Shown here: positions 44,638 through 50,916 of the stretch, piece by piece
Layout of the letters: every line of letters starts with the position of its first letter
Position numbering within the stretch: the first letter of the stretch is position 1
Assembly: GCA_021613535.1 (NCBI GenBank)
Contig: CP075492.1
Coordinates: 12,028,001-12,092,000 of the forward strand
Direction of reading: 5' to 3'
DNA length: 64,000 nucleotides
From: Adineta vaga
Taxonomy: Eukaryota; Animalia; Rotifera
The notes under the pieces: model-generated
What the model saw: the letters and a program-made list of their open reading frames with translations, nothing else
Told to the model about the DNA's origin: nothing
Database searches by the model: none
Position numbers and translations under genes: made by a program

Positions 44638-45363
44638 ATGTCGAAAAAAGGATTAGTAGTGATTACTGGTGCAAGTTCTGGTATTGGCGAAGCAACAGCT
44701 CGATCATTTTCTCAAGCTGGCCATCCATTATTATTACTTGCTCGACGCCTTGATCGTTTAGAAGCATTAAAACTACCGAATACTCTCTGTGAAAAAGTTG
44801 ATGTTACTGATCGTGATCAAATCAAATCAGCAGTTGAAAAAGCTGAAAAACAATACGGTCCAGTTGATTGTCTTGTAAACAATGCCGGTGTTATGTTATT
44901 AGGTTTAGCTGATACACAAGATCCAAAAGAATGGGAACAAATGGTGCAAGTCAATATAATGGGTGTTCTCAATGGTATACATGTTGTACTTGCCGGAATG
45001 AAAGAACGTCGTCAAGGAACAGTCATTAATATAAGTTCAGTTGCAGGACGTAAAACATTTCCTAATCATGCTGTTTATTGTGGTACTAAATTTTGTGTTC
45101 ATGCATATACTGAACAAATTCGTGAAGAAGCTGCATCCTATGATGTTCGTTTCATAACCATTGCACCAGGAGTAGTCGAAACTGAACTTTTATCACATAC
45201 AACAGCGGAAAAGATTGTTAAAGATTATAATCAATGGAAAAAAGAAATGGGTCAACCATTAGAAAGTGAAGATGTTGCAAATTCAATTCTATTTGCATAT
45301 CAACAACCACAACGTGTTTGCATTCGAGAAATTGTCCTCTGTCCAACAAGACAAGACAAATAG
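44638..45363 (+). CDS. Classical NADP(H)-dependent short-chain dehydrogenase/reductase, intronless, bacterial-type
   Basis: TGASSGIG, LARR (NADP preference), NNAG, ISSVAG, YCGTK catalytic motif, IAPGVVETEL. Confidence 0.95.
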   Translation: MSKKGLVVITGASSGIGEATARSFSQAGHPLLLLARRLDRLEALKLPNTLCEKVDVTDRDQIKSAVEKAEKQYGPVDCLVNNAGVMLLGLADTQDPKEWEQMVQVNIMGVLNGIHVVLAGMKERRQGTVINISSVAGRKTFPNHAVYCGTKFCVHAYTEQIREEAASYDVRFITIAPGVVETELLSHTTAEKIVKDYNQWKKEMGQPLESEDVANSILFAYQQPQRVCIREIVLCPTRQDK

Positions 45364-45787
45364 ACAGTGATAGAACCTACAAACGAAATTAGTTTTTTTT
45401 ATACAAATGAAATTTTATCATCCTCTTTCATTTATTTTATATTTGAAATAAAAATGACTTAACTTCATCAGAATTATATTCTAAGGATTAACGTTCATTT
45501 ACACATTCAAATATTTCGATTTGAATCACATTTGGTGTACTACAAGTACAACCAAAATACTTTATTAATCTGTTCCTTTATGAAAAAATAGACTACAAAC
45601 ATACATTCTCATAAATGAATACAAGAGATGAAGAAGAAGAAGAAGAAAAGAAAAACAAGGCATCAAGCTAGAAATACAATGCTGTTATAATACTATTTAT
45701 ACAAAAACAAATAGATAGAAAATGTTTGTTGGAACTGTTCCCATTGAGCAAACAAAAATGATATATGACTGAAAGACGAAATAGATT

Positions 45788-48700
45788 TCAAAATAATGGT
45801 CTTCGAGTATCTTGTTCATCAACATCAAGTAAAAGAGTTGTACAAGTAGTTGTATGTTGTCGTATAATAACATTGGAATCGAGTTTTTCATGACTTTTTC
45901 GTGAAATTGTATGATTGAGAAAACTTTCGACTGTTGATAATTGCAAAGGCATAAGATAATGCTTTCGTAATTGTATTAATTGCATATTTCGACTTAATGT
46001 GATTGCTAACCACCAACGAAAATGAATTCTTTGATGATTTGTATACAGATAAGTATCTCGTTTTGATGTACGTAAATACTGACAACGTTGTTGAATTTGT
46101 TCATTAACAATTGAACAAAAACAAACGAGAACTGGATGTGTATGAAGACATTCCATATGTATAAATGAAACGTAAGAGAGAAAACCAATATCCATTTTTT
46201 CTAATGATCGTCCAAGTATACAATAATCCAAACGTGGAAGAAATAGAAAAGTTGCTAACCAACTTTTCATTAAACGAAATGTACATGAAATCATTCCAAG
46301 AAAACAATCGAAAAAGAAGTTAAAATACGTAAATATGAAGAATATTCGCAGATTTTTTAATACCATTCCTTTTCCATGTCTAAAAAAACAAATATTCAAT
46401 TTATTCATTCGTTCTTTCTTTCTTTCTAATCATACACTTACTTTTGTAAAAAAAATGTCTTTGATAAAAACCATTGAACAATAAATACCATTAAATAAAT
46501 AACTAACAAGGGTATTAATACTTTTGCAATTTCTTCAACAAGAAATAAGTGTTTACATAAAACGCGTAGAATAACAAACATAAAAAATAATAAATTTCCA
46601 ATGATAAGATATCCAAATGTTAAATAAGCAATACAATAACCAGGATAATGAATATTTTTCGACATTAATCTCGCATTTTTAAATGTCGATCGTGAAGGTA
46701 TATCAATAAATATTCCTCTATATGCATCAAGCATATGTCTTTGATAATGTTTCATACCGATGAATAATTGACCGAAATAAATCATGGATGTCAAACAACA
46801 AGCGAAGATCATTTCATATTTAAGATTCGATAATTTCGGTTCAGGTAAATCAAGTTCATCATAGAGTATTAATAATGGCATAAGAGTAAAACTATAGATT
46901 TTCTCGATAAGATTAAAACCATTTTCGAGAATATTGAAAGTTAAATAATAGATTAACATGAATGCAATTATGTAAAGATTTAAAATTTGTTTCGAATATT
47001 GAAAATATTTCTCGGGTCGATAGAATTGATAGAGAAAAGATTTGATGAATGAAAGTTGTTGTTGATATTGATATGATTTTTGAAAGAGATTTTGAACATA
47101 ACGATATTCGATGGGTTGAATTTGTCTGGAAGAAAACGTTGGCTCATGATAAATATGTTTCATTGATCTTTTCTGAGAATTTCGTTCGTTGTTACAACAA
47201 AAGAATGTTTGATAGAGATTTAGAATTAACAAATAGGTTAATCGACAACAAATATATGTTAAACATAGATAATATGGAGCATATTTAAGTACACTAATTG
47301 TTGAAGAATCAAAACCGAATTGTTCGAATGTCGAAAGAGAATCATTCGTATGAATAGATGTTGAAAGATTTAAATTAATCGATGACCAATTTAATGAATG
47401 TGGAGATAACTGAGGAGAGGCAAATGTCTAAAACGAAAAAAAATAGAAGATTGATACATGTATTTAGTTATCTATTACTTGTATTGTTGAAGCAATCGTT
47501 GTTGTTGTTGTTGTTGTGGTTGTTGCTGTTAGTTTTGTTCCTCGAAATGAGAAACGTTCTCGAAACCTATGCAATCGATTTCGAAATTCTCCTCCTGATC
47601 GTGCATCTTCATATTCCGGTAGAAAAATCGGTGTAACCGTACTAGTCATCAATAGATTCCGTTCATATTTTGCTGTCAACTCTGTTTTCAATTGTTCAAA
47701 TTTTTGCCATGTTCGAATGAATGGATTCATATTAATACAAAACACCTGTTCGAACACTCTTAAGCATAAATCTAACCACATATATAAAGAACATAGAGCA
47801 TAATAAAGTATATTTGCATTCGCCATTTCAATAACTGCAAAGACAGGATAATATCGTAAACCAATAATAATTATTAAACCAAATTGTCGAATTAAATCAA
47901 GCAACGGACCATTTATTGTTAATAATTTCATTTGTGCTGTTTTTAAAAACATTTCTTCAATAATTTCAAGTATTTCATGACTAATAATACCACATAAAAT
48001 CATTGTATCGAAACGATTTTGTTTCGAAAATGGATTAAATGGTAAGGGAATATAGATGGAAAATTTCTCTTTCGTATATTCTTTTCGTGTTTGATTGAAT
48101 ACAATAAATAGAATAATAACTAAAGCCAATGGTAATGTTAATAGATTATGATAATAATTATTTTCATATAAAATACAAAATTGAAATAATTCTGTTGAAT
48201 GAATTAATGTTTCTTTGACGTAATCTTTTGCATTGATAATAATTACACAAATGATAATTGTTAATGTAATTGGTAAAAGAATGAGAAGTAATTTTTTTGG
48301 TTTAATAAATAGTTTACGAAAGTTTGAACATCGAGATGAATGATATGTGTAATCATGAGAGTTTGTAGTATGAAGATGATCAATAGATTTCAATGGTCTT
48401 TTCATCGAATTTTGAGCACTATTTGAAACACTAAAATGAGAAGATGATTTTATGAAAGATTTTATTTGAATAAACCTACGGTGGATATTGTCCATGAAGA
48501 ATTTTTCGAAATGACCAAGAATCATCGGATCGATCAATATTGATAATGTACGACATGATGCAAGCAATTAAAATTATCGCAATACCAATGATGATTTGTA
48601 TACCTTGACTACTCCCTGAAATAAAATAATTGAACTCAACATGTTTCTCAAGATGATCGTATTTGATAGAATTCTTTGATTCTTAACTCTCTTCAAGTGT

Positions 48701-49693
48701 CAACAAAAGGTAAAATTATGTAACATTGACTAGTTCTATACTGATAGTCTTTTAAAATATTATATAAACATACATTTTTCACATTGATCTCCCGTATAAA
48801 GAAATCGACATTGACATTTATAGGATTTTGTCCATGGTAAATTAATACATTTACCATATTTACCACAATTACTCGTATTATTATAACATCGATCAATTGC
48901 TAGAATAAATGAAATAAAAATGAAGATATTCTTTTTGTTCCTTTTCTATCGAACTTACTTTGTTTACAAACATATGGACGTAAAGCTTGTTCAACACATG
49001 GTGCTGGTGTAAGAACACTTGTATTTCTTGCTAACCAAAGAATTCCACAATCATAGGCAAGAATATCTCGATTATTATCTACCCAAAATCGATAAACCGG
49101 TGTTTCTTTTAATGGCATATCATTGGACCAAAACCAAGTATCTAAATTGTAATAACAAATTTCATTTCAAATCAACTTTGAAAAACAAAATCCTACTATT
49201 CATTTTGCGTAAGCCAATATAAACCGATACACTATCAGATCCTGATTTCAATCCAATAAGTTCACGTTCAATAAATTCATATTCATCTATAGATTCAATA
49301 GCTAATAAACGAGCATCGTTCATTGTTGGTAATGTTAAACAATTATTATAAGCTCGTTCCCATGAAGATGCTGGTTCTGTTTTCATATAAGTATAACATG
49401 AACCAGCATAATATTTTGATGGTGAAATACATTCTAAATAAGAAAAGAAAAGAAAACCAACAAATTCTATTCAGTATTTCGTTCTTGTTCGTATATGTAA
49501 CATACGTATTCCGTGTTTCACTTTGTCTTTTGTTTCTTTGATTAGTTGAAATGCTTCCTGACCACGATTTGTAACTAGAAAGAAAAGATCGATGTATACT
49601 GAAACAAAACATTGAATATTTACTTGATGTGGTTTGAACATCGTTTACAAGAAGAAAACAAATAAAGATCGAAAGAATTATTTGTCGAATCAT
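45788..49693 (-). CDS. STRA6-like (RBP receptor family) polytopic membrane protein with N-terminal signal peptide, C-type lectin domain and EGF domain
   Basis: STRA6 hallmarks: PLPFNPF…RF, GLRYYP, HYPGY.IAYL..GY, FFFDCFLG…RL, PRLD..ILGR..E..D.GF.SY…E..HTHP, RWWLAITL.RN.QL..LRK. Upstream exons give SCY…SWERAYNNC…LLAIES..E.EFI…YIGL…W.W…DC…PC…YVC (CTLD) and C…CGKYGKCINL…YKCQCRFLYTGDQCE (EGF), joined by phase-compatible GT-AG introns. Confidence 0.85.
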
Positions 49694-50916
49694 TGAAATC
49701 GAATCATATTTCTATTGAACATCTACAAAATGAACGAAAAGAAAATTAAACAAGGACATTTAAACTGATACAGATGTCGAGACAATGAAAGAGAACAAAA
49801 ACAATAATTTCATCGACGAAATTTGATCATCTTTTCTTTTAACGATGATGTTTTCATTAACAAAATTTCTTTTAAAGAAAGTCACGTTTTGAATCATATC
49901 TTTTATTGTGTCTATTCTCAACCGATTGTACTCTTCAAAAAAACAACAACAGCACACACACACACACAACCGTAAATGAAATCTCACACCTACTTGTAAA
50001 TATGAAAAAAAAATCAAATAGATTTGTGTCAGACGCCTATTTAGATATTCCTTATTGAACGTGAATGCATACAAATTGTCGATACCACTTCATCGAATAT
50101 TCATCGACGATAAATGTCTATGTCTACACTTACATCTATTAGAAACAATCATCAGTCTTATCAACGTGACTTTTCAACTACAACTATCCGCCTACTGCTG
50201 TTTGTCTTGTAGAATTTAAAGTAAAAAAAAAGATTATAATGGTTGAATGAACGATCGAAACTTATGCAACTGATTCTTTTGAATTCGAACGTTCAATCTC
50301 CTTCTTTTTTTGTTGATAATGTTTGTTCAAAGAAGGACATATTCGTATTCAATGAAGTCAAGAAAAAGAATGAAGAAGAAATGAACAAAGTAAACGATTA
50401 CATCAAGCGGAAGCAAAGCGATTTGAAGAATAACAGAAAAAAAGGGTCAATAAAGATTTCATATTGAAAGAAGGAGAAAGAAGGAAGGTATACGATTATC
50501 GTATCTTACACATTCATTGATTTTGAACAATGTGCATGAATAAACATACGTATAAGACCTACGTAATAATCATTGTAACGGACATATTCAATCAGCCATT
50601 TACCTATATGATTTGAATGACAGTTGGAACTACTACAACGAGCATTTGTTATTATTGATTGATATCTTCAACTTACCACTGACCGACAATAATACATAGG
50701 AGGCGATATTGTATAACCGGAACGAAATTGATCGAGAGTATTTTTCTTTCCTTTCTCTCTCTCTCTCCCCTCCCTCTTACTTTTTCACTATGACAATAGT
50801 GTCATGTGTGAGTACGCAAATACACGATGGAATAATACAATAGATGATGGTGGGTCTCATTAAACAAGCAATTCTTTCTATGTATACGCATGAAATATTG
50901 CCTGGAAGGAATATGT

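Follow-up and report, generated by a model that had tools for sequence, protein, structure and literature searches.

The gene considered here lies on the minus strand (49693-45788) of a 64,000-nucleotide stretch of the bdelloid rotifer Adineta vaga (G000:C3:12028001-12092000, hereafter the window), from a genome of 100.8 Mb in six contigs with approximately 30% G+C. Its nine exons, joined by script, encode a protein of 1116 amino acids, in which a C-type lectin-like domain (CTLD) and an EGF-like domain are followed by a membrane helix (TMa), a linker, a second helix (TMb) and a body of the STRA6 type. We consider it quite probable that this is one gene for a single CTLD-EGF-TMa-linker-TMb-STRA6 receptor, which would capture its ligand in cis. 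STRA6 is known almost exclusively as the vertebrate receptor for the retinol-binding protein.

As read in the sequence, the start codon (ATG) stands at 49693 and the stop codon (TGA) at 45790-45788. Script comparison found the product to be identical, residue for residue, to the public protein P0148 (hypothetical protein I4U23_014640 [Adineta vaga]), on which the whole-chain searches were run, while the exons were searched singly. A first pass, with splice phases tested by script, gave eight in-frame exons and canonical GT..AG introns of 49-190 nucleotides, to which RNA then added one exon; all nine exons are open and the introns canonical (Table 1). Three public runs were placed on 45700-49800. 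X3 is a DNA run and shows an even, unbroken depth across the whole placed stretch, while X5 and X6 come from two other studies and are taken as RNA because their contigs are spliced. Introns 48616-48773 (GTATGT..TTTCAG), 48900-48958, 49142-49196 and 47428-47478 are spliced out in the contigs of X5 and X6, and a fifth intron is spliced out at the joint 49624/49574, seen in X5 with a side of 69 letters, which gives the exon 49574-49506. Record 12 of X5 spans from 47479 to 47427, and its 59 unplaced letters are the masked poly-Thr stretch at 47479-47537. An ACA/ACN repeat at 47489-47537 (minus strand) encodes this threonine run, which lies in the STRA6 body, within a long loop (residues ~525-622) predicted to be disordered; as the repeat was masked in read placement, joints beside it are hidden. 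The gene is expressed and spliced. An earlier note, made from the letters of this DNA, had given the span 45788-49693, the EGF exon at 48899-48774, the exon with the membrane helix at 48615-48480 and the introns 48616-48773 and 48431-48479, and had read lectin, EGF and STRA6 parts as one frame. All of these coordinates hold in the sequence and the parts do join in frame; the listed exons stand, but the 69-nucleotide exon had been missed.

The membrane-embedded part of the chain belongs to the STRA6 family by sequence as well as by fold. The profile RBP_receptor (PF14752), whose cut-off is 25 bits, reaches 133.5 bits (E 1.3e-38), aligning residues 636-1060 of P0148 to profile positions 159-605, and exon 7 is tied to the N-terminal part of the profile via acanthocephalan family members. 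Among relatives of solved structure, zebrafish STRA6 (5SY1) comes closest in sequence (E 2.7e-16, residues 700-1086 aligned with 239-650) and in fold too (Foldseek E 3.1e-10, TM-score 0.58 by target). The VIA comparison with it yields Z 20.7 and a root-mean-square deviation of 7.8; 497 residues align, at ~16% identity, pairing 360-1062 of the model with 31-630 of the chain. The full-length AlphaFold model behind these comparisons is poor, with a mean predicted local distance difference test score (pLDDT) of 53.5 and a predicted TM-score (pTM) of 0.46; it served only to delimit the match, and no conclusion on a dimer or on how TMa and TMb pack was drawn from it. A feature search of the ESM Atlas gave no usable match. 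Since the STRA6 fold begins at residue 360, TMa (234-252) and TMb (321-339) are extra helices, in keeping with the proposal in the earlier note that two additional hydrophobic helices precede STRA6 TM1. The linker of 68 amino acids between them is basic (K+R 12 versus D+E 5). K and R are absent from the loop that follows TMb, and a basic character returns in the loop behind STRA6 TM1. A predicted arrangement with the ectodomain outside, the linker inside and the STRA6 N-terminus outside fits this positive-inside pattern, and the charges of linker and loops thereby agree with the suggestion that an even number of added helices keeps the N-terminus of STRA6 extracellular.

Residues 1036-1060 (RWWLAITL...) align with the zebrafish CaMBP2 peptide, as had been anticipated for a C-terminal segment resembling the calmodulin-binding region of vertebrate STRA6, and this segment is conserved across the family at the level of sequence. 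In zebrafish STRA6 it is the peptide used as CaMBP2 that contacts calmodulin most extensively (PMC7154012). The rotifer protein shares with zebrafish and human STRA6 (5SY1; the retinol-uptake receptor) the whole body, beginning shortly ahead of TM1 and extending to the cytoplasmic helices, and its TM1 is likewise predicted to start on the extracellular side. It also has a helix homologous to CaMBP2, which may bind calmodulin. It differs from them by ~337 extra N-terminal residues, comprising signal peptide, CTLD, EGF, TMa, cytoplasmic linker and TMb, where the vertebrate N-terminus is short and domain-free, and by its long disordered poly-Thr loop. Compared with its ohnolog, locus L011, the ratio of nonsynonymous to synonymous substitution rates (dN/dS) is 0.18-0.42 in every exon, and both halves of the protein, ectodomain and body, are under purifying selection.

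On the extracellular side, Lectin_C (PF00059) covers residues 40-190 of P0148 and positions 3-107 of the 107 in the profile, with 39.3 bits against a cut-off of 22.6 (E 1.2e-9). The domain is a CTLD of the long form (residues ~47-186), having the YIGL motif and six cysteines (four core and two long-form), which together with the six of the EGF exon give 12 in the ectodomain. The EGF exon scores 20.4 bits with Pfam EGF (cut-off 21.5) and 21.3 with EGF_3 (cut-off 28.5), E being 3e-4 to 6e-4; the earlier note had expected all three profiles on one chain, and while Lectin_C and RBP_receptor exceed their cut-offs, EGF remains just below. Orthologues carry the automatic UniProt name 'EGF-like domain-containing protein'. 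Searched singly, the two CTLD exons gave no Pfam match, the domain being visible only on P0148 or on cut-outs of it, and Pfam found no sushi domain on P0148. An alignment with E-selectin runs across the CTLD and the EGF module alike (E 1.7e-4, pairing residues 85-228 with 22-155). In this alignment EPN is replaced by VDN and WND by LTP, as also in the orthologues, so that the canonical calcium-sugar site is absent, which bears out the earlier reading of a CTLD lacking EPN and QPD. Model residues 47-188 match CTLD structures with VIA-align Z of 9.0-9.8; the best structural neighbours are non-sugar-binding CTLDs, namely snake-venom snaclecs, LOX-1, NK-receptor CTLDs and CLEC9A, which like the rotifer domain are without the canonical calcium-sugar motifs, but the sugar-binding CTLDs of DC-SIGN and langerin tie with them in Z, so that Z does not discriminate the CTLD subclass. 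E- and L-selectin resemble the rotifer protein in having a CTLD followed directly by EGF and then by a membrane anchor. Unlike it, they possess the EPN/WND calcium-sugar site and sushi repeats, whereas the rotifer anchor runs on into a polytopic, transporter-like body; judged from the alignments, the resemblance to selectins is limited to the CTLD-EGF tandem.

The mechanism that we propose for such a receptor is as follows. The two extra helices would let a type-I ectodomain precede the STRA6 body without inverting that body, and the CTLD-EGF module would bind a protein, lipoprotein or lipid ligand, not a sugar via calcium. The bound ligand would be held over the STRA6-type lipophilic cleft, from which a small hydrophobic cargo could then be passed into or out of the membrane, possibly under the control of calmodulin. 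The module would act in cis in the way that docking of soluble RBP4 does for vertebrate STRA6. Several points weigh against a single receptor operating in this manner. Exons 7 and 8, searched alone in the exon-by-exon search, gave no Pfam match, and hence the N-terminal half of the STRA6 body is very divergent; the match in fold and the positions given to TMa and TMb draw on a weak model together with sequence, because the structure model is poor. To our knowledge there is no RBP4 in rotifers, although no orthologue search was made. Among the X5 and X6 contigs listed for 45700-49800, no single one joins 48480 to 48430, and an additional trans-spliced isoform with the STRA6 part alone may exist.

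It is also conceivable, though in our view unlikely, that the fusion is real and the body moves no lipid, in which case the receptor would act in adhesion or signalling, its polytopic body serving as an anchor, a dimerisation platform or a scaffold for calmodulin or kinases. In favour of this, vertebrate STRA6 signals too, as a review describes, adhesion receptors such as the selectins typically have CTLD-EGF tandems, and the N-terminal half of the body has diverged beyond the reach of Pfam exon by exon. However, the whole nine-helix body has been retained with its cytoplasmic helices, under purifying selection in all exons, and the most conserved blocks are the membrane helices in the C-terminal half of the body; both tend to speak against this alternative.

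Whether the ectodomain and the body form one chain depends on the junction intron, 48431-48479. The earlier note had looked to RNA for the splicing of this intron and of 48616-48773; the latter is spliced in contigs, but none of the listed contigs spans the former. Record 19 of X6 stops exactly at the donor edge, 48480, with one extra letter that does not fit the intron, and the X6 bin depths (3.27, 0.49), together with a variant placed 34 letters from the end of a contig, agree with a contig of depth 3.5 over 48284-48430, as deduced from the bins. The junction intron has zero depth in the RNA runs X5 and X6 and full depth in the DNA run X3, and as record 19 accounts for all of bin 48440-48576, it is without RNA cover. 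The ohnolog L011 (contig 6; 55-73% identical) has the same order of parts, with a junction intron of 73 nucleotides (GTAAGT..TTTTAG) at the same place, in phase 2 and in frame, and a linker ~85 residues longer. On two related contigs, L013 (P0037) and L012 (P0004), TMa, linker, TMb and STRA6 body lie within one uninterrupted open reading frame, without junction intron or stop. The single fused chain has been annotated independently in Didymodactylos carnosus, Adineta ricciae and A. steineri, and likewise in Rotaria sordida, R. socialis, R. magnacalcarata and Rotaria sp., with the alignment running through the junction, in at least seven species overall. This comparative evidence for the join is stronger than that from the RNA contigs.

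The TAG that follows GQYPP was considered as a termination signal and rejected: any phase-2 GTAGGT or GTAAGT donor creates an in-frame stop automatically, and therefore the TAG is not evidence for termination. We regard it as very improbable that the locus comprises two adjacent genes, that is, a CTLD-EGF type-I protein ending at this TAG (48478-48476) and a separate STRA6-like protein starting from the ATG at 48404, the two perhaps forming an operon whose transcript would be resolved at the acceptor 48430 by trans-splicing of a spliced leader. The lack of a listed RNA contig bridging the junction, the in-frame ATG 26 nucleotides past the acceptor and the models of the relatives P0090 and P0097, which begin at TMb without an ectodomain, would be consistent with two genes. 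Yet the stop behind the donor is the automatic outcome just described, and the RNA contig halts exactly at 48480 and does not run into a 3' untranslated region, the intron being uncovered in RNA. Moreover, the ohnolog retains donor, acceptor and frame despite its different intron length and much longer linker, L012 and L013 continue from TMa to the body with neither intron nor stop, and both the public annotation and the orthologues of at least seven species present one chain. A mis-assembly, a pseudogene or a gene-prediction artefact mimicking fusion has in its favour the general risk of merged models, P0049 (2335 amino acids), P0153 and P0166 among the relatives being clearly merged or truncated, but it is effectively refuted by the continuous and even DNA cover of X3, the nine open exons with canonical introns, the expression, a dN/dS below 0.45, and an order of parts that recurs in many species and at many loci.

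Table 1. Parts of the lectin-EGF-STRA6 gene and the junction intron, with positions in the window and the observations on which each assignment draws
Feature	Position	Strand	Basis
Exon 1: start codon and signal peptide (residues 1-23)	49693-49624	-	hydrophobic N-terminus; RNA joint 49624/49574 (X5)
Exon 2, 69 nucleotides: short conserved helix before the CTLD	49574-49506	-	RNA joint; needed for 1116 amino acids; kept in orthologues
CTLD, two exons	49433-49197 + 49141-48959	-	Lectin_C, VIA and E-selectin alignment; intron 49142-49196 RNA-confirmed
EGF-like exon, six cysteines	48899-48774	-	sub-cut-off Pfam; E-selectin EGF alignment; both flanking introns RNA-confirmed
Exon with TMa (48601-48545, residues 234-252) and the conserved juxtamembrane motif DRSxDxWSF	48615-48480	-	hydropathy 2.67; orthologues
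Junction intron, 49 nucleotides, GTAGGT..TTTTAG, phase 2	48431-48479	-	in frame; no X5/X6 depth; full X3 depth
Exon 7: basic linker, TMb (48291-48235, residues 321-339), first STRA6 helices (TM1 onward), poly-Thr tract	48430-47479	-	matches N-terminal parts of RBP_receptor proteins
Exon 8: mid STRA6 body	47427-46442	-	RBP_receptor stretch 636-1060 of P0148; 5SY1 alignment from residue 700
Exon 9: last STRA6 helices, CaMBP2-homologous cytoplasmic helix (46018-45962), tail, TGA	46379-45788	-	RBP_receptor E 5e-27 (exon alone); CaMBP2 alignment

Within the last exon, two RNA contigs of X6 have a 25-letter loose end at 46134, and X5 has two substitutions nearby (46112 and 46133), which may reflect strain variation or an alternative end.

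The locus had been presented as a chimeric receptor, but it is no one-off: the same design occurs across Monogononta, Bdelloidea and Acanthocephala and at no fewer than 11 loci of the Adineta genome itself. An exhaustive, profile-free search with exon 7 returned 79 relatives, those named being bdelloids, the monogonont Brachionus calyciflorus (P0093, 1171 amino acids) and the acanthocephalans Pomphorhynchus laevis and Neoechinorhynchus agilis. P0093 and the P. laevis protein P0050 contain all of CTLD, EGF, TMa, TMb and STRA6 body, and the same architecture is found in proteins of Didymodactylos, Adineta, Rotaria, Brachionus and Pomphorhynchus. The word-based protein searches reached rotifers only and thus say nothing on other phyla. 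Exon 9 has 19 matches in the A. vaga genome, and at least 11 of these 19 loci have CTLD/EGF exons 2-4.5 kb upstream on the same strand. At seven RBP_receptor loci of this genome no upstream CTLD/EGF exons were found (C1:14052417, C4:13246526, C4:13263219, C4:289432, C1:4207861, C1:13515737 and C6:11094144); two of the seven, on contig 4, are only 17 kb apart. They may be STRA6-like genes devoid of an ectodomain, or their N-termini may be too divergent for detection. Searched against its own genome, the first CTLD exon matched only the ohnolog, and the other paralogs emerged only when the N-termini of divergent relatives were used as queries.

A tree of the C-terminal body, which is unrooted and has long branches, was built leaving out P0120, P0127, P0152, P0153, P0059 and rows with fewer than 150 profile positions. 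Lectin-bearing members occur in every major clade, and the nearest orthologue is A. steineri P0150. Because the tree is unrooted, its branches are long and many of the 'no ectodomain' rows are truncated models, we claim neither a single origin nor losses. The lectin-EGF-STRA6 form is the usual form of an old, expanded family in Monogononta, Bdelloidea and Acanthocephala. P0090 and P0097, Logan/JGI proteins which lie near the Brachionus protein P0093 in the tree, start at TMb, without signal peptide, CTLD, EGF or TMa. If these models are complete, they suggest that TMb stems from an older form with ten helices that gained a type-I CTLD-EGF receptor, or else that the ectodomain was lost. At L013 (5079-8605) exons 1 and 2 are fused and the junction intron is absent; L012 lacks the junction intron too, but there the EGF exon and the exon of TMa are still separated by an intron. 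As L012 and L013 differ in intron content, introns have been gained or lost within the family. Likely mergers with neighbouring genes are seen in P0049 of Pomphorhynchus (2335 amino acids), P0153 of Rotaria (1392 amino acids, with RCC1-type domains) and P0162 of Rotaria (1692 amino acids, 'dynamin-type'). Since several public models look merged, counts of architectures in databases need checking locus by locus.

Adjacent to the gene, 425 bp from its stop and convergent with it, an intronless gene on the plus strand (44638-45363) encodes a short-chain dehydrogenase of 241 amino acids (adh_short, E 4e-52). Its style looks bacterial and it could have been acquired horizontally; the pairing of a short-chain dehydrogenase with a STRA6-family gene may be coincidental.

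No description of a lectin-EGF-STRA6 architecture was found in the papers searched on STRA6 together with rotifers, invertebrates, C-type lectins or the Pfam families. As far as this search shows, the architecture is unpublished, as the earlier note had supposed; the exact protein and many orthologues are, however, already public, either unnamed or automatically named. Albalat et al. (PMC3184775) described only STRA6-like sequences in amphioxus and Nematostella, and no ectodomain fusion. Like the rotifer genes, STRA6-like/RBPR2 and the invertebrate Stra6l of amphioxus and Nematostella (PMC3184775) are non-vertebrate members of the family. The existence of such members makes the STRA6 family older than the RBP4 system. 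Our tree contains no vertebrate sequences and so gives the rotifer clade no position with respect to STRA6 or STRA6L.

We put forward tentatively, as a possibility that is still somewhat doubtful, that STRA6 in Syndermata is a self-contained lipid gate, in which the CTLD-EGF arm, tethered via the two-helix adaptor, replaces docking of a soluble carrier such as RBP4, and the dozen or more paralogs with their divergent ectodomains form a receptor repertoire for different carriers or lipids. If this were true, the ancestral role of the family would be a general, carrier-coupled transfer of lipids, of which the vertebrate retinol system is one specialisation. The soluble ectodomain can be used as bait and so offers a handle on the ligands, while the fused chain is a natural test of how extracellular binding is coupled to the lipophilic cleft. 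It is also a clean example of a type-I receptor fused to a polytopic protein via two adaptor helices with no inversion, and it flags a large, unnamed gene family in the annotations of rotifers and acanthocephalans.

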